NCBI RefSeq assembly: GCF_011386835.1
Contig: NC_088802.1
Location: 3,658,001 to 3,722,000, forward strand
Origin: Chrysemys picta bellii
Lineage: Eukaryota
DNA: 64,000 bases
Direction: 5' to 3'
A program made the position numbers and the translations under genes. Positions within the stretch are counted from its first letter, which is position 1. Each line of letters opens with the position of its first letter. This document shows positions 32,941 to 49,152 of this stretch, in pieces. The notes under the pieces were generated by a model, which was not told where the DNA came from, searched no databases, and saw only the letters and a program-made list of their open reading frames with translations.

Positions 32941-33149
32941 GATCTCCCGGCTGGGCGGGGCAGGGTTTGGCCCCCCAGCACTTAGCAGGCCGTTGGGGGG
33001 TGAATGCCCCGGCCCGGGCGCTATTGTGGCCGGGATGGCCAGTGACACACTCAGCTATTCAGGTATCAATGGCCCAACCCTGGGCCCAGCTGACCTGGGA
33101 GCGGCTCATTGTGTTTCCCTGGATGGGCTGTTAAACCTGAGGCCTCAAC

Positions 33150-34095
33150 CTGTGGGCTGCGGGTCGGGAGTGAAGGGCACCGGCGGAGCAGGGGGGCCAG
33201 GGCTGGGCTGGCGGGGGCTGCGGGTCGGGAGTGAGGGGCACCGGCGGAGCAGGGGGGCCAGGGCTGGGCTGGCAGGGGGCTGCGGGTCGGGAGTGAGAGG
33301 CACCGGCAGAGCTGGGGGGGCAGGGCTGGGCTGGCAGGGGGCTGCGGGTCGGGAGTGAGGGGCACCGGCGGAGCAGGGGGGCCAGGGCTGGGCTGGCGGG
33401 GGCTGCGGGTCGGGAGTGAGAGGCACCGGCGGAGCAGGGGGGCCAGGGCTGGGCTGGCAGGGGGCTGCGGGTCGGGAGTGAGAGGCACCGGCAGAGCTGG
33501 GGGGGCAGGGCTGGGCTAGCAGGGGCTGCGGGTCGGGAGTGAGGGGCACCGGCAGAGCTGGGGGAGCCCAGGGCTGGGCTAGCAGGGGCTGCGGGTCGGG
33601 AGTGAGGGGCACCGGCGGAGCAGGGGGGCCAGGGCTGGGCTGGCAGGGGGCTGCGGGTCGGGAGTGAGAGGCACCGGCAGAGCTGGGGGGGCAGGGCTGG
33701 GCTGGCAGGGGGCTGCGGGTCGGGAGTGAGGGGCACCGGCGGAGCAGGGGGGCCAGGGCTGGGCTGGCGGGGGCTGCGGGTCGGGAGTGAGAGGCACCGG
33801 CGGAGCAGGGGGGCCAGGGCTGGGCTGGCAGGGGGCTGCGGGTCGGGAGTGAGAGGCACCGGCAGAGCTGGGGGGGCAGGGCTGGGCTAGCAGGGGCTGC
33901 GGGTCGGGAGTGAGGGGCACCGGCAGAGCTGGGGGGCAGGGCTGGGCTGGCAGGGGGCTGCGGGTCGGGAGTGAGGGGCACCGGCAGAGCTGGGGGGGGC
34001 AGGGCTGGGCTGGCAGGGGCTGTGGGTCGGGAGTGAGGGGCACCGGCAGAGCTGGGGGGGCAGGGCTGGGCTAGCAGGGGGCTGCGAGTCGGGCA
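33150..34095. repeat. ~61-bp GC-rich minisatellite (copy 1)
   Basis: About 15 copies of gggctgcgggtcgggagtgaggggcaccggcagagctgggggggcagggctgggctggcagg. Confidence 0.92.
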
Positions 34096-36117
34096 TGAGG
34101 GGCACTGGAAGGTTAGTGGGATCAGGTAGAGAATTGAGGGTGAACGCTCAGGGATTCAGGGGGAATTTGGGGTCCCATGTCTCGGGGGGCAGGTCTAGCT
34201 GGGGGGTATTTATAGCATTCAAAGAGAATTTGGGGAGCAAGTGCTTGATATTTGGGGGTGATTCTTCGGGGGCACTGGGTCGGGGGAAGGGTTCACTGAA
34301 GCGTCTGGGGGCCCAGTTGGATTGAGGGGGGCTGGTGAGTCTCGGGGGGTCCTGTCTAGCAAGGGAGCCCTGCTGGGATTCAGGGTGGTGGATATTCTGG
34401 GGGGAAGTTGATAGATGGGATGCTGAAGAGACTTTGGTGGTTGTGGGGGCCTCTGTTGAAGGATGTGGGGGGTTCCCCAAATCTCAGGATCACATGACCA
34501 GCCAAGGGGGGGTGGAGGGTTATGGGGCGTAGGCTGCGCATCTCCAGCAACCCCATGGCCCGGTCCTTTATCCTGCAGCCCAGGAGATGGGACCACAGTC
34601 CACTGGCAGCCCCATGGCTGTGTCCCCCCAGAGCAGGGACAGCACCCCATCCCCGTCACAGTCCCCCCCTATGCAGCCTGCCCCCCCGATCAGAGCCAGT
34701 GCCCCCTAGAAGGGCCAGGCCCCATATCCTGGACTCGCAGACGCCTTTGTCTCTTTTGCTGTTCTCTTTTATTCCAAGTTGGAGCGTTGAGTAAACAGGA
34801 CTTAGGGTGGGAAACTGGGGGGGGGGGGGAGCAGTATGGGGGGGCAGCTGGGCAGGGGGGGGAGCAGGGAGCATCTCCCTCCGATCTCCCACGGGAGCCT
34901 GGTAAAGCCGCTGTATGGACCAGAGCGGGTTTGTGTCAGCTGGGGGGCTCAGACCTGCTGGGGGGCTCAGACCTGCCCCATGTTTCCGACAGGCCGGGGC
35001 GTGGGGGCTGCCCAGACAACCGGAGCCCTGCCGGATGAGCCGGCAGCCACGTGACTGAGCACGGCTGTGACACGCGTGTGAGCCGACGCCCAGGGGCGAC
35101 ACGGATGAGGGAACCCGGCCGCCAGCACACGGATGACGCCGCGGGGCCGTTGTGCACACGGCCAGGAGCTCCCAAATCTCTGCTCGCTTGGCCTTAGGGG
35201 GAAGGAGAGTGTATGGGGGAGGGGCGGTTCCTGGTCCATATCCCCCATATCGGCCCCCTCATCAACTACTGTTGGGTGGGTGGGGGGAGTTGGTGTCGCC
35301 TCAAAATGGGTCCCCCTAAGTCCCTGTCCCCTCTGAGTCTATGACTCCTCCCATGATTCCCCTCCAGTCACTAGCCACCTCTATCAGCCTCCTGGTGAAT
35401 ATCGCCCTGGGGTGTCACTTCAATACATGTCCCCTCCCCCCCCCCCCCCCCCGCCACCCTCATCCCAGCACGACACCACCCCTGGTTCCTACCCTATTTA
35501 GGTTCCCCCGGTCAATATACCCCTTATATAGGGGCTGGCTGTCTCCTGGTGTCACCTCAATAGAGCCCTGATCTCATGGTACCCACCCGCCCCCTCTTTG
35601 GCCTGCTGGGAGTGGGCTGTTGGGGGGGGGGTCCCATGGTGCATGGTGTCTGCCCCACAGAGCTTTCCCTCCACACACACACTGTTTAGTCTCAGTCAGT
35701 ATCCTTCTATATGGGCCCCCTGGTCAATTTTCTCTTGGTGTCACCCCAAATCCAATCCCCCCAACTCCTGAACCCACTAAGAGCCTCCTATGGTTCCTAC
35801 CTTGTGTAGTTCTCCCCAGTCAATATCCCCCCCATATGCACCAGCCCCATGGCACAGCCCCTGCCCCCTGAAAGGAACCATGCTCTGGACAGATGGGACT
35901 GCAGGGAGGGTAGAGAGCAGAGGAGCGAGGGAGTCCCTGGGGGGTCTCCGCATCAGAGTGATGACCCTTCACCTTTAACCTCCCCCGCCCCGAGTTGCTC
36001 GGGGGGGGCGGGGGGGGCGGGTTCTTGGGGAAGATGCTGCCAAAATCGGAGCAGATTTTCTCCACCAGGGGCGCCGTGCTGCTCCGGGGGACGGGGGCTG
36101 AATAATGGGGGGGCAGG

Positions 36118-39100
36118 TTAGGGGGGGCAGCGCTGCCGGGCGGTCACCGTGTTGAAGAGCGGGTTGTGGATTTCCATCTCCCCACTCTGGGAAGGGGGGG
36201 AAGAAAGAGAGAAAGGGAGACATTAGTGAGGGCACCGTGCGAGGGGAAGAGCGCAGCGACCCAGACCCGTCCCCACAGCCCAGCGCCCCCTGCTTCCCCC
36301 GCCCCCTGTCCTCACAGCCCAGCGCCCCCTGCTGCCCCCACACTGCTCCCCACAACCCAACGCACCCTGCTGCCCCCGCCCCCATCCCCACAGCCCAGCG
36401 CCCCCTGCTTCCCCCGCCCTGCTCCCCACAGCCCAGCGCCCCCTGCTGCCCCCGCCCCCGTCCCCACAGCCCAGCGCCCCCTGCTGCTCCCACCCCGCTC
36501 CCCACAGCCCAGCGCCCCCTGCTGCCCCTGTCCCGATCCCCACAGCCCAGCGCCCCCTGCTGCCCCCGCCCCGCTCCCCACAGCCCAGCGCCCCCTGCTG
36601 CCCCCGTCCCGATCCCCACAACCCAGCGCCCCCTGCTGCCCCCGTCCTGATCCCCACAGCCCAGCGCCCCCTGCTGCCCCCGTCCTGTTCCCCACAGCCC
36701 AGCGCCCCCTGCTGACCCCGCCCCCATCCCCACAGCCCAGCGCCCCCTGCTGCCCCTGTCCCGATCCCCACAACCCAGCGCCCCCTGCTGCCCCTGCCCC
36801 TGTCCCCACAGTCCGGCGCCCCTGCTCAGCCCCCGCCCTGCACCCCCACAGCCCAGCGCCCCCTGCTGCCCCTGCCCCTGTCCCCACAGTCCGGCGCCCC
36901 TGCTCAGCCCCCGCCCTGCACCCCCACAGCCCAGCGCCCCCTACCGGTGCCAGTCCGGGACATTCGTACACAGTAAAGTCGCCGTTCTCAGTCTCTGACT
37001 CCGTCGACAGCTGCTGGACGGGCTTTGGGGGGCTCCTGGGGGAGACGGACCCAGACACGGGGTGAGGAACCGCATGAACCAGGCCGGGGGCCGCGGCCGG
37101 GGTCTAGGCCAGGGGATCCGGGGGCTGAGGCGGCTCCGCAGCTAGGGGTGGAGATCCAAGGGACCCAGGTATCCGGGTGGGAAACGGGTTGGGGGGGGCA
37201 CCTAGACCCGAGCGCCCATGTCCCATGGGCCCGGCTAGACGACGGGCGATCTCCAGTCCTCCCAGGGAGGTGTGGAAAACCGGGGGTAGGGGGAAGGGAG
37301 TAACTGTCCCCAAGACACCCCCAAAGTGGGAGGAGGGTAGAGGGGGCAGCTCATGGGGCCAGGGGCTGAAGGACGGGGGGGGGGGATTTTGGGATGCAAA
37401 ATTTCCGGGTTGGATTGTGGGGGGAAGGTCAGAGGGGGCAGGGGGCAGGGGTGACTTGGGTAGGTTTGGGTTTCAGGAAGGGGTGGATTGGGGGGAAGTG
37501 GGGGATGGGAAGGGGAAGATTCAAGGGTGAGTCTGGAGTTTGCGGGGGTCGGTTTGAGGTCATGATTTGGGGGGTGCTTTTGGGGTGGGGCAGATTTGGG
37601 GGGAGAGGAGGCTTGGGGGTGGGGTGAGGGGGCATAGGGTGGGGGAAAGGAAGGAGTGGATTCTGGGGGGCAGATTCGAGGGTCCCTTCCCTAAGCCCCT
37701 CCCCCTCCCCACCCATAACCAATGGGGTGAACGGGGGGTGGGGAGGAATGGAGGGGAACTCACTCCTCATTGGTCAGGATCTTTTTCTGGCGCTGGTACT
37801 GGTGCACCTGGCAGGACTGGGCCAGCCGGGCGTCCATGTACTGGGGGGACAGACAGACAGACGGGGAGATGGTCATTGGTCAGGTGAAACTGCCGTCCCG
37901 GATGCCTGGGTCCCATTCCCCGTCCTGGTCTCCAGCCCCCTAGGGGTGAGCACCTGCACTGCTGTCCCGGACGCCTGGGTCCCATTCCCCATCCTGGTCT
38001 CCATCCCCCTAGGGGTGAGCACCCTGCACTGCCGTCCCGGATGCCTGGGTCCCATTCCCTGTCCTGATCTCCGACCCCCTAAGGGTGAGCATGGGGGTGG
38101 GGGTCTCACCATTCCGGGCTGGTGGTATCGATAATGATTCCCCCGATACGCCGTATATGCCAACTTCTGGGCCAGACGCACCTCCCGCTGCAACCTGGGG
38201 GCACGGAGTGGGGGGGGGTCAGAGCAGCGGGTGGGGCAGTCCAGAGCTGGGCTGGCAGGTGCTGCGGGTCGGGAGTGAGGGGCACCAGCAGAGCTGGGGG
38301 GGCAGGGCTGGGCTGGCAGGGGGCTGCGGGTCGGGAGTGAGGGGCACCGGCAGAGCTGGGGGGCAGGGCTGGGCTGGCAGGGGCTGCGGGTCGGGAGTGA
38401 GGGGCACCGGCAGAGCTGGGGGGGGCAGGGCTGGGCTGGCAGGGGCTGTGAGTTGGGAGTGAGGGGCACCAGCAGAGCTGGGGGGGGCAGGGCTGGGCTA
38501 GCAGGGGCTGCGAGTTGGGAGTGAGGGGCATCGGCAGAGTTGGGGGGGCAGGGCTGGGCTAGCAGGGGGCTGCGGGTCGGGAGTGAGGGGCACCGGCAGA
38601 GCTGGGGGGGGGCAGGGCTGGGCTGGCAGGGGCTGCGGGTCGGGAGTGAGGGGCACCGGCAGAGCTGGGGGGGGGCAGGGCTGGGCTGGCAGGGGCTGCG
38701 GGTCGGTAGTGAGGGGCACCGGCAGAGCTGGGGGGGGCAGGGCTGGGCTGGCAGGGGCTGCGGGTCAGGAGTGAGGGGCACCGGCAGAGCTGGGGGGGGG
38801 CAGGGCTGGGCTGGCAGGGGCTGCGGGTCGGGAGTGAGGGGCACCGGCAGAGCTGGGGGGGGGGGGGGCAGGGCTGGGCTGGCAGGGGCTGCGAGTTGGG
38901 AGTGAGGGGCACCGGCAGAGCTGGGGGTGGGCAGGTCTGGCCTGGCAGGGGCTGCGGGTCGGGAGTGAGGGGCACCGGCAGAGTGGGGTGGGGGGCAGAG
39001 CTGGGGGGGGCAGGGGGCTGCTGTGGGGAGGTGCAGTTCCTACCTGTACCAGCAGAGGGCAGCCACCAGCAGCCCTGAGACCCCGGTCACGGAGCACATC

Positions 39101-41417
39101 AACACCAGCACTGCGGGGCGGGGGGAGGGGAGAGAAACATTAACCCCTTGAGCACTGCCCCCCCCAGCCCCTCAATGCCTCCCTGGCCCCCAGGCGCTCT
39201 GTCCCCCCTGCCCCCATTCCCGGCCCCTCCCGTTACTCACGCAGAGACACGGCCTCATTGAGCCGGGAAGCCGGGGGACGTGACTTCAGATCTTCCTCCG
39301 GCCGGGCGGGGCTGGAGCCAGGCGTCAGGGCGGAGGGGGGAGCGGTGGGGGGAGGGGGAGACGTAGGGGGGGTCTCGGTGACCGAAGGAACCTGGGGGTC
39401 AATCCCCATGGAGCCAGCTGCAAAGATAGAGAGGTTAGAGCGCCCCCTGCTGCCCCCGTCCTGCCCCCCACAGCCCAGTGCTCCCTGCTGCCCCCCGTCC
39501 TGCCCCCCACAGCCCAGCGCCACCTGCTGCCCCGTCCTGCCCCCCACAGCCCAGCGCCCCCTGCTGCCCCCCCGTCCTGCCCCCCACAGCCCAGCGCCCC
39601 CTGCTGCCCCCTGTCCTGCCCCCCACAGCCCAGCGCCCTCTGCTGCCCCCTGTCCTGCCCCCCACAGCCCAGTATCCCCTGCTGACCTCTGCCCCGCCTC
39701 CCACAGCCCAGCGACCCCTGCTGCCCCCCGTCCTGCCCCCCCACAGCCCAGCGCATCCTGCTGCCCCCCCGTCCTGCCCCCCCACAGCCCAGCGCATCCT
39801 GCTGCCCCCTATCCTCCCCCCACAGCCCAGCGCCCCCTGCTGCCCCCTGTTCTGCCCCCCACAGCCCAGCGCCCCCTGCTGCCCCCTGTTCTGCCCCCCC
39901 ACAGCCCAGCGCCCCCTGCTGCCCCCCGTCCTGCCCCCCACAGCCCAGCGACCCCTGCCCCACCCCCCACAGCCCAGTATCCCCTGCTGACCTCTGCCCC
40001 GCCCCCCACAGCCCAGCACCCCCTGCTGCCCCCTGCCCGCTCCCTACAGCCCAGCGCCCCCTGCTGAGTCCCCTGTTCCCTTCAGTCTCGACCGTGCTGG
40101 GGGGTCTCGGTCCCAGGGGTCCTGGATCCCTTCTGTTTTTTGGCCACCATGGAGCGGATGAGGGTGGCCAGGTCGCTGGGTCTAGCATCCGACTTGGCTC
40201 CATCGCCTGAGGGAGAAACACAGGGAGATGGGCAGGTGCCCCTCACTCCCGACCCGCAGCCCCTGCCAGCCCAGCCCTGCCCCCCCCAGCTCTGCCGATG
40301 CCCCTCACTCCCGACCCGCAGCCCCCTGCCAGCCCAGCCCTGCCCCCCCCCAGCTCTGCCGATGCCCCTCACTCCCGACCCGCAGCCCCCTGCCAGCCCA
40401 GCCCTGCCCCCCCCCAGCTCTGCCGGTGCCCCTCACTCCCGACCCGCAGCCCCTGCCAGCCCAGCCCTGCCCCCCCCCAGCTCTGCCGGTGCCCCTCACT
40501 CCCAACCCGCAGCCCCTGCCAGCCCAGCCCTGCCCCCCCCAGCTCTGCTGGTGCCCCTCACTCCTGACCCGCAGCCCCTGCCAGCCCAGCCCTGGGCTCC
40601 CCCCAGCCTCTGCCGGTGCCCCTCACCGTTCCTGTGCGGTGTCTCGAGGACACAGTCCCCACCCGGGTCCTCATGGTAGGGGCGGATGCAGGGGCCACAG
40701 CTCCGGATCCCCCCGGGGCCGCAGCCCTTACGCCGCTGTAGGAGACAGTTCAGCCGGATCCGCGGTGGGCAAATCGCAGCCGGGCCTACAGGGAGAGAAC
40801 CGGAGCAGCCCCCGCTTTAACCACCAGCCCCCCCCCCCCCTCCCCAGAGCCAGGAGAGAACCCAGGAGTCCTGGCTCCCAGTCCCCCCTGCTCTAACCCA
40901 CCAGCCCCACTCCCCTCCCAGAGCCAGGAGAGAGAACCCAGGAGTCCTGGCTCCCACCCACCCCCGCTCTAACCACTAGTCCCTGCTCCCCTCCCAGATG
41001 TTTCAACATCTGTCCCTGCTTCTTAAAATCATAATCTCCTGACAGCCAGAGCAAAAAAAATCAGAGGAGAAAATCTTTGGTTAAATAGTAAGAGAGATGG
41101 AAATTTGCTCCTGTTCTCCCCATGGGCAGCCCCCCCCCAGCACTGCCCCCCCCCAGCTCTGCCGGTGCCCCTCACTCCCGACCTGCAGCCCCTGCCAGCC
41201 CAGCCCTGCCGGTGCCTCTCACACCCGACCTGCAGCCTCGGGAAACTGGCAGTAGAACCCAGGAGTCCTGGCCCCCAGCCCCTCCTACTCTCCTTCACAC
41301 ACCTCCGATGCCCCTCCCCCGCCCTGTACCCCCCTTACCTGCCTCCCCCCCGGCCCCCGGGGCCAGCCCCAGCCCCAGTAGAGCAGACAGGGCCGCCAGC
41401 CAGCGCAGGGTCCGCAT
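36118..41417 (-). CDS. NPDC1-like type I membrane protein (NPDC1L), 305 aa
   Basis: Exons 41417-41339 (signal peptide MRTLRWLAALSALLGLGLAPG), 40785-40627 (CPPRIRLNCLLQRRKGCGPGGIRSCGPCIRPYHEDPGGDCV), 40206-40093, 39417-39241, 39110-39044 (TM LVLMCSVTGVSGLLVAALCWYR), 38194-38110 (LQREVRLAQK), 37840-37764, 37035-36945 (NGDFTVYECPGLAP) and 36186-36118 (SGEMEIHNPLF). 918 nt, phases consistent, NPDC1 family motifs present. Confidence 0.9.
36250..36945. repeat. CTCF-core minisatellite in the last NPDC1L intron
   Basis: ~40-bp units cccacagcccagcgccccctgctgccccc. Confidence 0.9.
38240..38995. repeat. ~61-bp minisatellite (copy 2, same orientation as 33150-34095)
   Basis: gggctgcgggtcgggagtgaggggcaccggcagagctggggg units. 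Confidence 0.92.
39430..40070. repeat. CTCF-core minisatellite in NPDC1L intron 3
   Basis: cccacagcccagcgccccctgctgccccc units. Confidence 0.9.
40230..40625. repeat. ~61-bp minisatellite (copy 3, inverted)
   Basis: gcccctcactcccgacccgcagcccctgccagcccagccctgcccccccagctctgcc is the reverse complement of the copy 1/2 unit. Confidence 0.92.
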
Positions 41418-43369: not shown

Positions 43370-43795
43370 GCACAGAATATCAGGGTTGGAAGGGACCTCA
43401 GGAGGCATCTAGTCCAACCCCCTGCTCAAAGCAGGACCAATTCCCAACTAAATCATCCCAGCCAGGGCTTTGTCAAGCCGGGCCTTAAAAACCACTAAGG
43501 AAGGAGACTCCACCACCTCCCTAAGTAACTCATTCCAGTGCTTCACCACCCTCCTAGTGAAAAAGTGTTTCCTAATATCCAACCTAAACCTCCCCAACTG
43601 CAACTTGAGACCATTACTCCTTGTTCTGTCATCTGCCACCACTGAGAACAGCCGAGCTCCATCCTCTTTGGAACCCCCCTTTCAGGTAGTTGAAAGCAGC
43701 TGTCAAATCCCCCCTCATTCTTCTCTTCTGCAGACTAAACAATCCCAGTTCCCTCAGCCTCTCCTCATAAATCATGTGCTCCAGCCCCCTAATCT
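43370..43795 (-). mobile_element. CR1 LINE 3' fragment
   Basis: Minus-strand [42 protein letters not shown] (CR1 ORF2 C-terminus) followed by a CR1 3' UTR. Confidence 0.93.
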
Positions 43796-43865
43796 ACAGT
43801 TTGTGCCGAACTGTAGAACTAGTTGCAAAGTTAACACCATCTTTGGTGGAAGACACAGTGAGTTT

Positions 43866-43950: not shown

Positions 43951-44898
43951 CTTGGGGATTTTTAACGCCATGTGTTTTCTGTAACTGTTACTTGAGCATT
44001 TGAGTATAAGAAGTATGATTGTTTTTTTACAACTTTTCTTATTATTGGGTTTTTATTGAACCCCCAAAATAGCGGCACTATTCTTTCACCCCGTTATTTT
44101 TCCTGGAAGGAGACAGAAAATTTGGCAAGGGGCATGTTTCTCCTAACAGTTAGCTGAAGATTTGGGTAGAATAGGGAGGATTCGATGCTAATGGTCTTTT
44201 TACCTTTAAAAAGGGAACAACGTCATGGCATAATATCTCACCCTCCCAGCCGAAACTGGGACCGTTTCACGTCTCACCCTGAGCGTCTGCCTCCACAATC
44301 GTCTCCGAGTGGCTGAGTATGATGAACGATTTGATTGTTTTCAATGTACGTATTATCGAGCATCTGAACTAAGTTGTTCTTTTTGGTCTCCTCTTCCTTT
44401 TCGTGATAATCAGCCCCGAGCTCCTGTACGCCACTTTTCATTGGCAGAAAACGATCGGGAACGTGCTGGGAGGTGTCAGAGGCTTTTGAGTTTTAACCCA
44501 GACTGGATTTCTCCCAACTGGTATCCAAACATTTGAGTTGAAATGCCAGTAATGAATAAACTAACGCCTCTGGTTCCTTGGCAGGCTGGGGTGGTCTCTT
44601 CGTCCGTGAGCCCCCACTGTCCAGAGGGCCAGCCAGCCAGACCTGATTTCTAGCCTAAAACTACCACCCAGCCCCCTACGATTTGTTAATAATTAAAAGC
44701 AAGAGAAAAACGCATTTGGGTAGCAAAGAAGGGGGTCACAAGAGGGCACGGCCCCCACAGGCTCATTCTTTCCTTCCACAGGCGGGTCTGACCATGAATC
44801 CGAGCCCGCCCTCAAGCGGGCGCGGCCAGGCCAAAGCCGGCTTCGCGGGAGGGGACGGGGGGCTCCGGCAGACGGCAGAGCTCCGGGACGGGCTCCCC

Positions 44899-46602
44899 TC
44901 AGGACCCCGCGTTACGCCTGTCGCCCAATAAGGATGTCGTCTCGTCGGCACTCCTGCGAGATTCTGCAACGAAAACACAGACAGGGCGTGTCTTCAACCA
45001 GCGACCCCACCGATGTGCTGGTAAGCGGGTGGGGACTTGGAGTTAGAGCGGGGGGGTGGGCCAGGAGCCAGGACTCCTGGGTTCTCTCCTGGCTCTGGGA
45101 GGGGAGTGGGGCCTGCGGGTTAGAGCAGGGGGGCTGGGAGCCAGGACTCCTGGGTTCTCTCCCCAGCACTGGGAGAGGGGGGTGGGGTCTGGGGGTTAGA
45201 GTGGGTGGGCTGGGAGCCAGGACTCCTGGGTTCTCTCCTGGCTCAGGGAGGGGGGTGGGGTCTGGGGGTTAGAGTGGGTGGGCTGGGAGCCAGGACTCCC
45301 GGGTTCTCTCCTGGATCAGGGAGGGGGGTGGGGTCTGGGGGTTGGGGGTAGGGGCTGGGAGCCAGGACTCCTGGGTTCTCTCCCCAGCACTGGGAGAGGG
45401 GGGTGGGGTCTGGGGGTTGGGGGTAGGGGCTGGGAGCCAGGACTCCTGGGTTCTCTCCTGGCTCAGGGAGGGGCGTCTAGTGGTTAGAGCAGGCTGAACA
45501 TTCCCTTCCACCTCAAACAGCGGCAGCCGCACCCCATGGCCATCTCCTGTCTCAGCTGCCGCAGCATCTCCTCCAAATGCCCTCGTGCCTCAGTTTACCT
45601 CCCTCGTGACCGGCACTGGGGTGGATGATTCTCTAGAGCTGCTGGGCCTGACTAGCTTCATTCCAGCCCTGACGTGGCCCAATCACAGATTGGCCAATCG
45701 CCGGTTCATTAGTGTCACCGGCCTCCACCCAAGTTTGCAGCTAGTCCAGCCGGTTGCAGGGGAACAGCCGCTGTTCCGGCCGGACACCGCCTAACGCCGC
45801 CCCAGCCGGTCTGGAGCCGGATCCTGAGCCGATGTCAGTCTGGAGCGACCTCACTGCCCTCCAGGGAGTCAGGGCGGGATTCGGAGCTCAGACTAACTTG
45901 TTCACCTGGCCTCAGTGGGAGCTAAATATCAATTCAAAGGGAAACTGAGGCACAGAGAGGCAAACCAGGGATGGAACCCAGGAGTCCTGGCTCTAACCGC
46001 TGGGCCCCCTCCTCTCCCAGAGCCGAGGACTGAACCCAGGAGTCCTGGCTCCCAGTATCCCTGCTCCTCTGCAGATGGGAACGGTCTAGGGCTTGGGAAG
46101 AATAGCAGCGCAGTTCTTATTGCACCCAGTAGGGGGCAGTGCAAAGCGCAAGCGTCACTGCAGAGATGGAAACTTAAACCTAAGCGCAATAATATTCTAT
46201 CCATCCCCATATACGGGCTCGGGCGCTGGATCTAGCCCACCTCCCCCTGGATCCGTATCTGTGTGTCTGCCCCATATCCCCATCCATCCGTCCTCCCCCT
46301 GGCTCCATACATGTGTCTGCCCCATACCCCCCCCCCCCGATCCATCCGTCTGTCCTGCCCCCTGGGTCCTTATCTGTGTGTCTGCCCCATACCCCCGTCC
46401 ATCCGTCCTCCTCTCTGGATCCATATCTTTGTGTCTGCCCCACACGCCCCTGTTCCCCGCACCGCAGATACCCACCCAGCCCTCCCAGGTGCCCCGCTCA
46501 CTCTCCCCCCCCCCCGGTACCTTTCTTCCTCCTGCACAGCCGCTTGATGAAGTGCCACATCCATTGCACGAGGAGGCAGAAGCACTTGCACTGGTTGCAC
46601 AT
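44899..46602 (-). CDS. Candidate unannotated 48-aa Cys-rich microprotein
   Basis: Exon 46602-46521 (MCNQCKCFCLLVQWMWHFIKRLCRRKK, donor gtacc) joins exon 44963-44899 (acceptor tgtgttttcgttgcag; ESRRSADETTSLLGDRRNAGS*) in phase 1. Upstream non-coding exon ~47920-47884 with donor gtaagg and TATATAAA at 47945-47952; AATAAA at 44052-44057. Confidence 0.7.
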
Positions 46603-47883
46603 CGCGGGCTCACCTGTGCCTGGGGGGAGTGGGGAGAACACCGGGGCCAGTGGTCAGGCAGCGCCGAGGCCAGAGTCGCTCCCGCCTGCCTCGCCAATCC
46701 CCCGCTGGGCTGGAGTCCGGGGCTCTCACCAGGCCAGGCTCAGACCTCTCGCGCCCCCTCCTGCACGTGGCCGCACGGCTCGCCTGGGATGAGGGGTCCC
46801 GGCTCTGAGCCAGGATCGTGGCGTGACCCCGCCACACGCTGTCCGGGGAGGGCCCCATGCGCATGGAGATCTGCTCCTACCCCTGGCTGTGCCATTTTCC
46901 CAGGGTCGGTGCTGCTGGCACTCCTCCCGCTCACCCGTCGTCTCGGCTTCTAGTATAATTAACCGCCCCACCCGCCCGCCTCCGCAGCGGCCTGTCAATC
47001 CGGCTACGGCGTGAGCCAGATCCCTGTGCTAACCTGCCCAGCGCCTCCTGGCTAGACCCCGGTCGTCCTGAATCGACGGCCAAACCGGTTTGAGTCCGCG
47101 GCGTGAGAAAAACACCAGCAGCAGCAGTGAGCTGGCTCCGGATTCACGCCAGGGCCGGCCCGGACTCCCCTGACCTCAGCGGGGTCGCTTGGGATTTAAA
47201 CGGGGGTCGCTGGAACCAGGACCCAGCAGCAGCCGCCCCCCGGGCCCCATGGGCAGCGGGAGATCTCTGACCGATTCCCATTCCCAGAATCCGAGGGACC
47301 GCCCTGATCTGGTCGTTTGATGACCTCTCTGTGCCAGGACTTCCCTGAATTAATTCCTGATTCAACGAGAACAGATCCTATCGAGCAAACTCGACCGAAC
47401 CACAGCCGGGGCCTCGGGGCCTCTGCCTCGACTCTCGGTAAAGTGTGCCCAGGGTTCATTCCCCTCCCTGTTACACAGTCACACCTCGCTTCCCGTCTGA
47501 ATTTGGCTGGCGCCCGCGTCCAGCCGTCGGATCGGAAAACTCTCTGGCCGCGAACGTCTGTTCCCCTTCCAGCCACGCCTAGGGGGGCTACATGGACCGA
47601 ACTCCCGGAGTCAGGGTTTCTAGCCCTCCTCGAATCGGGGGCCCCCAGAACTGGATCCCAGCCGCGGCCGCACCGGGGCCGAATCCTGAGGGCAAATCCC
47701 CTCTCGGCTCCTGCTCCAGAGTCCTGTTTACATGGCCCAGCATGGTGTTGGCACTTTCTCCACCCCCAAATCTTTGTCCCGTTTCCCAGGAGGGGGCCCC
47801 CTGAGCCCAGACACTTCTAAGAGCCACCAGGCCACGGGCTGGCGTGGCGTGTCCCCTCCGCTCCCCGCCAAAGAGATCCTTAC

Positions 47884-47965
47884 CGGTCTCCGGCGTCGTC
47901 CCGCTCTGGGTGCCTCTCCCTTATCCTCTGGGAACGGCCCCGGGTTTATATACCCGCCTCCCCGC
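47884..47965 (-). promoter_or_regulatory. TATA box and first non-coding exon of the candidate microprotein gene
   Basis: Minus strand gggaggcgggTATATAAAcccgg, then ~60 nt downstream ccggagaccg|gtaagg. Confidence 0.6.
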
Positions 47966-49152
47966 CCTGAGTGCCCAGACCGGCTGGATCCCAGCGGGGC
48001 CAAGTCACGGGGTGGGGAGAAGTGGGGTGTTTTCACAACCACCCGGAGCAGCCGGTAGGGTTGGTAGCCTGCCAGGTTGTCACTGAAGCCAGCATCCTCC
48101 ACCTCACCCCTCACCAGGGATGATTCTTTCTGGGGGTCTAAGGGGGGTGGTGAGATTTGGGGGATGTGGAATTGGGGCAGAGCAGATCTGAACCCCTCCC
48201 CCCCCGGCTCCCTTTATGGGATCTGGGCTGATTCCCCATCCCTGCCCCCTCAAGTGAGCTGGAATTTGGGGGGAGCCTTGTCGCTCTAGGGGGGTGTCTG
48301 ACCCTCTCTCCCTGCCCCCCCGGCATGGGCTAGGATCTGGGGGACCCTGCCCCATGAGGGTGTCTCCACCCCCCATGTGGGAGCCAGGATCTGGGGGACC
48401 CTGATCCTCTGAGGTGTCTGCTTCCCAACTCCAATGTGGGAGCCAGAACCTGGGGGCCCTGCCCCTATGGAGGTGTCTCCACGGAGCGTGAAGCGAAAGC
48501 AGATTGACGTAACGGAAATCCCGGCGGTGACACGTGGAGGTGCGCGGCACCCTGCTGGGAGGGGGGTGGGAGGGCCCTGGCCAGCGTGTGGGGCAGCCCA
48601 CCAGCCCTTCCCTTCGATGGATCTGCCGGATGTGTGGTCGTGCTGTGAGATGTTTGAAGCCTGATGCTGCCCCAACACAGGGGAAGCGATCTAGGGTCCC
48701 AAACCCTGACGGTTTTCCCACCTGGTGGTTACAGGAACTTTTAAGCTCGGGAGAGAGGATTGGTGAGTCTCTTTCTCCACCATTCCCTACAACATATCCC
48801 ACCCCACCATGTCCAGATCCCCTTCCCATTCAGCCATTAGCACGTTACAAGCCATCATCACCCACTGAGGTTTCACCAAAGCATTTGAGTAGAAACATTA
48901 ATTTTTAACAGGTTTTTTTCTTCATTTTTTAAGTTAGCCATCAAAATAGTAATACAAAAATCACTGTCCCTGTCACCTGTTTGTTTTTTTACCAGAAGGA
49001 ACCAGGCATTTTAGAAAAGAAGATTTTTCTCCTAGCTATTAGCCAAGCCTTTGAGTAGAATAACGTATTTTTACAGTTTTTCCTTCCTATTAGATATTTT
49101 ACCTTCGAAATAGCAGGCACATTTGTTCTTCTTTTCAACTGTTGTTTAAATT

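Follow-up and report, generated by a model that had tools for sequence, protein, structure and literature searches.

Does the interval between LSM2 and NPDC1L in the turtle MHC class III region hold a further protein-coding gene, and if so, what could so short a product do? The question arises within a window of 64,000 nt from Chrysemys picta bellii (contig NC_088802.1, positions 3,658,001 to 3,722,000), in whose own numbering all positions below are given. An earlier note had proposed here a complete new gene that the open reading frame (ORF) track had missed, encoding a Cys-rich peptide with an acidic dileucine motif. We conclude that 44030..47920 on the minus strand is a real three-exon protein-coding gene, probably transcribed on its own, with a 48-residue product; the explanation as a whole, which includes the mechanism proposed below, we put forward with moderate confidence. 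LSM2 lies head-to-head with it and NPDC1L lies downstream.

All elements of the gene model are on the minus strand. The core promoter (47940..48044), defined from the sequence and a six-turtle alignment, contains GGTTGTGAAA (48040-48031), a CACCC-type block CTCCCCACCCCGTGACT (48019-48003) that is invariant in that alignment, GC boxes (47967-47953) and a TATA box, TATATAAA (47952-47945). Exon 1 (47884..47920) is non-coding and ~37 nt long, with its 5' start estimated from TATA spacing. Its donor, G/GTAAGG, lies directly past 47884 and opens intron 1 (46614..47883). Exon 2 (46521..46613) encodes residues 1-27 and the first base of codon 28; its ATG (46602-46600), in the context GCGATGT, is 82 nt from the donor AAAG/GTACC directly past 46521, and no upstream ATG was found in the 55-nt leader. 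Intron 2 (44964..46520), of phase 1, includes a 73-nt tandem array (45052-45473) and closes with the acceptor TTGCAG directly before 44963, which is the same in six turtles. The coding part of exon 3 (44899..44963) supplies residues 28-48, including D34-E35-T-T-S-L39-L40, and ends in a TGA stop (44901-44899). It is followed by a 3' UTR (44030..44898) with AATAAA at 44057-44052 and cleavage estimated near 44030.

The TATA box, exon-1 donor, ATG, splice sites, stop and AATAAA are all located on this strand where the earlier note had placed them, and translation of the spliced ORF returns exactly the product that it quoted. Its remark that codons mostly end in G or C holds for 40 of the 48. It had put the start of exon 2 only roughly, at ~46614-46620; an acceptor is indeed present there, and its position can be refined. 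Two AGs, 6 nt apart, are available (46621-46620 and 46615-46614). Of these, only the AG at 46615-46614 is shared by all six turtles, which makes 46613 the most likely first base of exon 2; with the alternative AG, the exon would begin at 46619.

To follow the gene across turtles, NPDC1L served as the landmark for retrieving the homologous interval from Platysternon, Mauremys, Lepidochelys, Carettochelys and the side-necked Emydura. Both coding exons were located upstream of NPDC1L in Mauremys reevesii, Lepidochelys kempii, Emydura and Carettochelys. In all six turtles, Pleurodira and Trionychia included, the ORF is 147 nt long with the same ATG and the same TGA position, and a GT donor lies exactly 82 nt from the ATG in phase 1, with the AG acceptor also kept. 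No indel interrupts the ORF in any of the six, against a length range of 685-1947 nt for intron 2. Intron 1 ranges from ~800 to 1330 nt among species and, compared with that of Platysternon, has 90.8% identity and 144 gap columns. The flanking signals are retained as well: the promoter blocks are invariant or nearly so in the alignment, the exon-1 donor GGTAAG is kept in six of six, and AATAAA is kept 775-845 nt past the stop, giving a conserved 3' UTR length of ~850 nt. In Carettochelys, the core promoter is one of few alignable islands, and another island, 46608-46511, corresponds exactly to exon 2. The gene is present in all major turtle lineages, as sampled by these six species, and spans ~200 My of turtle evolution; the match of ORF, splice sites, promoter and poly(A) signal among them is far beyond chance.

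What is conserved in the product is also informative. Twenty-five of the 48 residues are invariant in the six turtles, comprising among others all five cysteines (C2, C5, C7, C9 and C23), W14, W16, KRL and DExTSLLG; K20-R21 and K26 are without change, and H17 is replaced by Y in the two deepest lineages. Residues 1-32 carry a net charge of +6 to +8. The cysteines flank the hydrophobic face of a cationic amphipathic helix, which agrees with the sequence pattern of an S-acylation anchor. AlphaFold models a helix over residues 1-20 (pLDDT 84-93), followed by a tail, which includes the peptide SADETTSLLGDR, at pLDDT 61-64. Some 10 residues past the basic cluster KRLCRRKKESRR, E35-T/A-T-S-L39-L40 fits the [DE]xxxL[LI] pattern and is invariant in the six species, bar one T/A change at an x position. 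The features on which the earlier note had built its functional idea, C2, C5, C7, C9, C23 and D-E-x-T-S-L-L, are thus invariant, as would be expected if they were important.

[DE]xxxL[LI] is an established adaptor sorting rule, and S-acylation of cysteines adjoining hydrophobic or basic stretches is likewise established. On this basis, we propose, as a plausible reading of the sequence that in its entirety is somewhat less likely than not, a lipid-anchored, AP-sorted endosomal peptide. A cationic amphipathic helix made up of residues 1-24, with Cys and Trp at its flanks, would rest against the membrane from the cytosolic side, and S-acylation of some of the five invariant cysteines would make attachment stable. 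The flexible tail could then show E35-x-x-x-L39-L40 to the clathrin adaptors AP-1, AP-2 or AP-3, so that the peptide would shuttle from the plasma membrane or TGN to endosomes or lysosomes and back, and could act there as the regulator or the carrier of a partner. A passage in PMC10032668, citing Meyer et al. 2018, describes dileucine motifs in disordered cytosolic regions as recruiting adaptors and clathrin. Two counterpoints to this mechanism may be set beside it: KRLCRRKKESRR might just as well direct the peptide to the nucleus or nucleolus, and the CxxCxCxC...H...C pattern could bind metal.

A coding gene could also yield a product that crosses the membrane. Here the N-terminus would be a single-span signal-anchor (N-out, C-in) with its cysteines juxtamembrane or in the bilayer, making a small bitopic protein like short transmembrane adaptors or regulins, whose dileucine tail would still be cytosolic. 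The hydrophobic stretch of residues 7-19 and the strongly positive cluster behind it fit the positive-inside rule, and many known microproteins are single-pass membrane proteins. However, a search by hydropathy for a single-pass segment of ~18-21 residues without charges found none: the best 19-residue window reaches a Kyte-Doolittle mean of just 0.9-1.1 across the six species, and charged or polar residues (D/E/N3, R/Q4, K/Q6, Q/R13 and H/Y17) fall inside the segment in every one. Furthermore, the hydrophobic moment is significantly high (0.52 vs 0.22 in shuffles, p 0.006), which points to a helix lying in the membrane plane and not spanning it. The transmembrane reading was rejected on hydropathy and we consider it unlikely; the N-terminus is predicted to be a cationic amphipathic helix rather than a transmembrane segment.

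Somewhat less likely still is a soluble basic peptide, again from a coding gene, that binds metal or nucleic acid. C2-x2-C5-x-C7-x-C9, H/Y17 and C23 would make up a Zn/Cu cluster, KRLCRRKKESRR would be the nuclear/nucleolar signal, and LL would either serve in nuclear export or have no role of its own. Five invariant cysteines within 23 residues would suit such a product, as would the high positive charge of the first 32 residues with its fixed K20-R21 and K26. Against it, the change of H17 to Y leaves no conserved ligand at this position, invariant Trp and Phe together with a strongly amphipathic helix would be unusual in a small metal cluster, and the invariant D-E-x-T-S-L-L-G block argues for a functional motif. 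We continue to prefer the lipid-anchored, adaptor-sorted peptide.

All three readings take the gene to be coding, and this was examined at the codon level. Pairwise dN/dS among the six turtles is 0.06-0.44, and a GY codon model gives an omega of 0.223, with a likelihood ratio statistic of 27.5 against omega = 1 (p 1.5e-7). In the two wrong frames, omega is 0.83 (not significant) and 3.1, and third codon positions have the largest share of variable columns (16, 10 and 23 for positions 1, 2 and 3). We conclude that the ORF evolves under purifying selection, and in the proposed frame only. The earlier note had named dN/dS as a check on the gene, and frame-disrupting indels and a lack of codon conservation in related turtles as what would speak against it; the outcome was purifying selection and an ORF with zero indels in six turtles.

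These data bear directly on whether the locus is instead a non-coding RNA or regulatory DNA, with an ORF that arose by chance and a conservation owed to an overlapping enhancer, a CpG island or RNA structure. Such a locus would agree with four annotated turtle genome records that show no protein here and with a CDS that, in the close species Platysternon, is only modestly more identical than the adjacent UTR (94.6% vs 93.1%). The frame specificity of the selection, the excess of variation at third positions, and a start, stop and phase shared without indels by six species spanning the turtle crown all argue against it, and we regard a non-coding origin as very improbable.

Evidence for transcription comes from small sequencing runs, which are RNA by guess only and in which presence was scored by sampled words. 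These runs hold 40-63% of exon 3 words and almost none from the introns. Run X3 has ~35 of its ~40 words inside exon 3, run X1 covers 0.40 of exon 3 vs 0.17 of the locus, and the 40-Mb run X28 covers 0.63 of exon 3. That the 3' exon occurs in RNA-like libraries without introns, as would fit a mature mRNA, is largely shown. Exon 3 is single-copy, which rules it out as a repeat (the flank is a CR1 fragment), and it is not part of a plus-strand neighbor, given that LSM2 is on the other side. The suggestion that these exons are alternative 5' exons of NPDC1L and the 48-codon ORF a uORF has in its favor the shared strand and the position of NPDC1L ~3 kb downstream (exons 40646-40780 and 36936-37037), but is scarcely credible given that a conserved AATAAA and a ~850-nt 3' UTR belong to the candidate itself, that RNA words cover its terminal exon, that annotated NPDC1L in four turtles begins 1.5-2.5 kb beyond its poly(A) signal, and that the peptide sequence is under selection, as regulatory uORFs usually are not.

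Has the protein been seen before? An exhaustive phmmer search of 1.84 billion representatives returned a sole match, TFJ96456.1 from Platysternon megacephalum, and a word-indexed protein search found nothing beyond this same prediction. It is a true orthologue, 94% identical, whose C-terminal 48 residues differ at 3 positions. It is named 'branched-chain alpha-keto acid dehydrogenase subunit E2' and runs to 73 aa through a predicted alternative first exon. It neither resembles BCKDH E2 in sequence nor contains a Pfam domain, and the name is wrong. Its 25-residue N-terminal extension is spurious, being unalignable in Emydura and Carettochelys and needing a weak donor. This is the fifth turtle record, wrongly named beside the four that lack a protein-coding gene here. 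The exact 48-aa string is absent from a collection of 15 billion proteins, Pfam and NCBIfam profiles gave 0 families at E up to 10, and the ESM Atlas gave no feature match, with generic single helices as structural neighbors; none of these searches gave a homologue outside turtles from which a function might be read. No paralogue was found in the turtle's own genome, where other matches had E > 1, and a literature search turned up nothing published on a gene in the LSM2-NPDC1L interval or on an ETTSLL protein. The earlier remark that this was not recognized as any known gene stands as regards families, and needs amending in that the gene was predicted once before, misnamed and extended. With a model conserved over ~200 My, an omega of 0.22, coarse RNA evidence and no known family match, a complete new gene missed by the ORF track is strongly supported.

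We also searched beyond turtles. In the lizards Lacerta agilis and Tiliqua scincoides, nothing was found within a 10-kb flank on the upstream side of NPDC1L, which the lizard intergenic distance may exceed, and the LSM2 flanks of the frog Mantella gave chance-level matches only. Next to LSM2 in a sparrow, there is an exon-2-like piece on the right strand with an acceptor, an ATG and a donor at +82. It scores 12.8 bits (pooled E 0.07), about equal to the best chance match, and has lost C5, C9 and C23 (3 of the 5 cysteines) and the basic cluster; exon 3 was sought in the sparrow LSM2 flanks and not found. The piece is not convincing and serves as a lead only. A bolder proposal, which we hold to be improbable, is that the sparrow piece is a diverged orthologue of a gene that predates turtles in an ancestral sauropsid MHC class III, and that the peptide is an endogenous Nef-like mini-adaptor. 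If this were true, a lipid-anchored helix would bind some membrane cargo, which might be an MHC-region product, and pass it to AP via ExxxLL, thereby controlling the surface levels of the cargo.

The turtle MHC class III neighborhood thus gains a well-supported protein-coding gene. Its product would join, in minimal form, two modules that are well understood: a cationic amphipathic helix rich in Cys and Trp, and an acidic dileucine signal. Because both have been fixed by ~200 My of selection, the peptide offers a clean natural test object for trafficking by an anchor and a sorting motif alone, and for what 48 residues can regulate at endosomal membranes. More generally, codon tests anchored in synteny can recover very short genes that escape filters based on homology and ORF length.

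Several known systems invite comparison. Regulins, TUNAR and SPAAR likewise come from genes of fewer than 100 codons, a class often mis-annotated as lncRNA or missed, and came to light through conservation at the codon level. Conserved vertebrate smORF microproteins, many of them acting at membranes, form a general field (PMC10032668). Most such microproteins are single-pass transmembrane, whereas the turtle peptide is predicted not to span the membrane and is so far confined to turtles. Its putative anchor resembles the S-acylated Cys clusters beside hydrophobic or basic residues that attach GAP-43 (MLCCMRR), PSD-95, CDC42SE1/2 and cysteine-string protein to membranes; in PSD-95, dual palmitoylation drives vesicular sorting (PMC2156213). 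None of these has the C-x2-C-x-C-x-C...W-x-W pattern or the 48-aa length, and no homology was detected. In HIV/SIV Nef, the N-terminal amphipathic helix is basic, lipidated and placed on the cytosolic leaflet, and a flexible loop with ExxxLL recruits AP. The likeness of ENTSLL in HIV-1 to ETTSLL in the turtle peptide would be a functional analogy only, in that sequence and size are unrelated and Nef has a folded cargo-binding core. LAMTOR1 (p18), a lipid-anchored Ragulator subunit of 161 aa, is N-myristoylated and wraps Ragulator by means of a scaffold domain; its anchor of myristoyl and palmitoyl Cys is followed by unstructured acidic dileucine-type signals that direct it to late endosomes and lysosomes. 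Although it has no sequence similarity to the turtle peptide by phmmer, and the latter lacks Gly2 and consists of anchor and motif only, the two would share, by analogy, the logic of an anchor coupled to a sorting motif.

All elements of the three-exon, minus-strand candidate gene that the earlier note placed between LSM2 and NPDC1L (window 44052-47965) are present in the sequence at the positions claimed for them. A TATA box (TATATAAA, 47952-47945) precedes a short exon 1 that ends at 47884 and is followed by a GTAAGG donor; exon 2 holds the ATG (46602-46600) and has its donor after 46521; a strong exon-3 acceptor, TTTTCGTTGCAG, lies directly before 44963; and the TGA stop (44901-44899) is followed by an AT-rich 3' UTR with AATAAA at 44057-44052. 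Joining 46521 to 44963 yields a spliced ORF that translates to exactly the 48-residue product quoted in that note, with G or C at the third position in 40 of 48 codons and no ATG in the 55-nt leader.

The only match in protein databases was a 73-residue Platysternon megacephalum prediction, TFJ96456.1 (P0001; locus L001, 10001-11836), whose C-terminal 48 residues differ from the candidate at three positions; exhaustive phmmer searching found no further relative. Its name, branched-chain alpha-keto acid dehydrogenase subunit E2, is plainly wrong, and its 25-residue N-terminal extension, from an alternative first exon absent in the two deepest turtle lineages (Emydura and Carettochelys), is unsupported. 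The earlier view that this is not any known gene thus holds as regards known relatives, but one prediction, misnamed, already existed. Because protein databases are blind to the candidate, neighbouring genes were taken as anchors. LSM2 gave usable loci from sparrow and frog, and the conserved C-terminal exon of NPDC1L led to annotated NPDC1L proteins of turtles and lizards, whose contigs were taken with 10-kb flanks. Both coding exons were found upstream of NPDC1L in four more turtles, Mauremys reevesii, Lepidochelys kempii, Carettochelys insculpta and Emydura macquarii, whose genome records all leave the LSM2-NPDC1L gap empty of protein-coding genes. With the window species and Platysternon, they span, on the established phylogeny, the turtle crown, Pleurodira versus Cryptodira, roughly 200 My.

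In all six turtles the ORF is 147 nt long, with an identical ATG and a purine at -3, a phase-1 GT donor exactly 82 nt after the ATG, an AG acceptor and a shared TGA stop; intron 2, by contrast, measures anywhere from 685 to 1947 nt. Exon 2 probably starts at 46613, because its second acceptor AG (46615-46614) is the only one common to all six. The six ORFs contain zero indels, and their pairwise dN/dS is 0.06-0.44. A Goldman-Yang codon model, applied to the six sequences on the accepted turtle topology, gave omega 0.223 and kappa 2.64, and fixing omega at 1 cost 13.8 log-likelihood units (LRT 27.5, p 1.5e-7). Since the two shifted frames gave omega 0.83 (not significant) and 3.1, with stops, in the same test, constraint acts on the candidate's reading frame rather than on the underlying DNA itself.

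In 6/6 turtles, conservation extends to the promoter blocks GGTTGTGAAA and CTCCCCACCCCGTGACT, the GC boxes, TATA box and exon-1 donor, as well as to AATAAA and the 3' UTR length. Most of the Carettochelys LSM2-NPDC1L gap cannot be aligned to the window, yet the promoter (48044-47940) and exon 2 (46608-46511) emerge as distinct islands.

The 2.37-Gb genome carries a single copy of the candidate. LSM2 exons lie on the plus strand (~51.7-53.3 kb), which puts the two genes head-to-head; exons of the NPDC1 family occur at 40646-40780 and 36936-37037 of the minus strand, so NPDC1L follows the candidate on the same strand. A POU and homeodomain gene stands 3.3-5.2 kb downstream of NPDC1L in all four turtle loci (L010-L013), and throughout the turtle crown the genes keep one order: LSM2, microprotein, NPDC1L, POU gene. 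In Mauremys mutica (P0051, GCA_020497125.1), an annotated LSM2 model 185 kb long, beside a TNF-family gene, is most likely a chimeric prediction. Several repeats occupy the region. Directly beyond the poly(A) signal is a CR1 LINE 3' fragment (43370-43798, with a minus-strand ORF remnant at 43451-43681), which has no counterpart in Platysternon and is therefore a lineage-specific insertion or else was deleted there. Intron 2 contains 5.7 copies of a 73-nt tandem unit (GAGAACCCAGGAGTCCTGGCTCCCAGCC..., 45052-45473) that also occurs dispersed across the window and in the loci of the other turtles, and that resembles a repeat derived from a turtle SINE. Proline-rich repeat frames of up to 388 aa, on the minus strand between and beyond NPDC1L exons (37876-39039 and 33148-34155), could be intronic minisatellite or mucin-like coding repeat.

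Expression was checked coarsely and strand-blind, by sampled words in an index of runs presumed by guess to be RNA. Run X3 (134 Mb) contained 0.42 of 83 exon-3 words versus 0.10 of 404 words across 44000-48000, with ~35 of the ~40 words found there falling within exon 3. Run X1 contained 0.40 versus 0.17, and a 40-Mb run from a different study 0.63 of exon-3 words. Exon 3 must be enriched, because libraries of this size represent ~0.05-fold genome coverage and cannot otherwise contain a single-copy stretch; this fits mature RNA, given the presumed nature of the runs.

Neither the surroundings of frog LSM2 nor, in two lizards, the 10 kb upstream of NPDC1L yielded the candidate. At the Passer montanus locus (L008, ~7361-7280, minus strand), sparrow LSM2 has an exon-2-like ORF, MCAGLQCLLNLLRWGWGVLKGLLGGHG, in head-to-head orientation to it, with simple repeats and a tandem array of 165 nt on its flanks. 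This ORF is preceded by an acceptor, starts with an ATG and reaches a GT donor after 82 nt; it shares 12/27 residues with Carettochelys at a borderline score (pooled E 0.07). Of the five cysteines it lacks C5, C9 and C23, the basic cluster is also missing, and no exon 3 was found after it. We conclude that the candidate is a new turtle-wide microprotein family with no known relatives, possibly older than turtles. The claim of a complete new gene is strongly supported by evolution, through ORF conservation and omega, and partly by expression.

Twenty-five of the 48 residues are invariant among the six turtles: M1, C2, C5, C7, F8, C9, L10, W14, W16, K20, R21, L22, C23, K26, E28, S29, D34, E35, T37, S38, L39, L40, G41, R43 and G47. 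A transmembrane helix at residues 2-24 is unlikely, as the segment is too polar (best 19-residue hydropathy ~1.0, internal charges in every species). Its hydrophobic moment is 0.52 versus 0.22 in shuffles (p 0.006), with Cys and Trp at the margins of the helix's hydrophobic face and a net charge of +6 to +8. AlphaFold predicts a helix over residues 1-20 (pLDDT 84-93) and gives the tail only 61-64; E-x-x-x-L-L in that tail is invariant. Cys clusters of this type are associated with S-acylation, and E-x-x-x-L-L-type motifs with AP adaptors. Because of this motif, the Cys cluster and the polar amphipathic N-terminus, we favour a reading in which residues 2-24 would form a lipid-stabilised, in-plane membrane anchor and the anchored peptide would display the sorting motif, a putative function that fits the conserved residues. 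Cys-cluster S-acylation and AP-adaptor motifs are treated further elsewhere (PMC10032668, PMC2156213).
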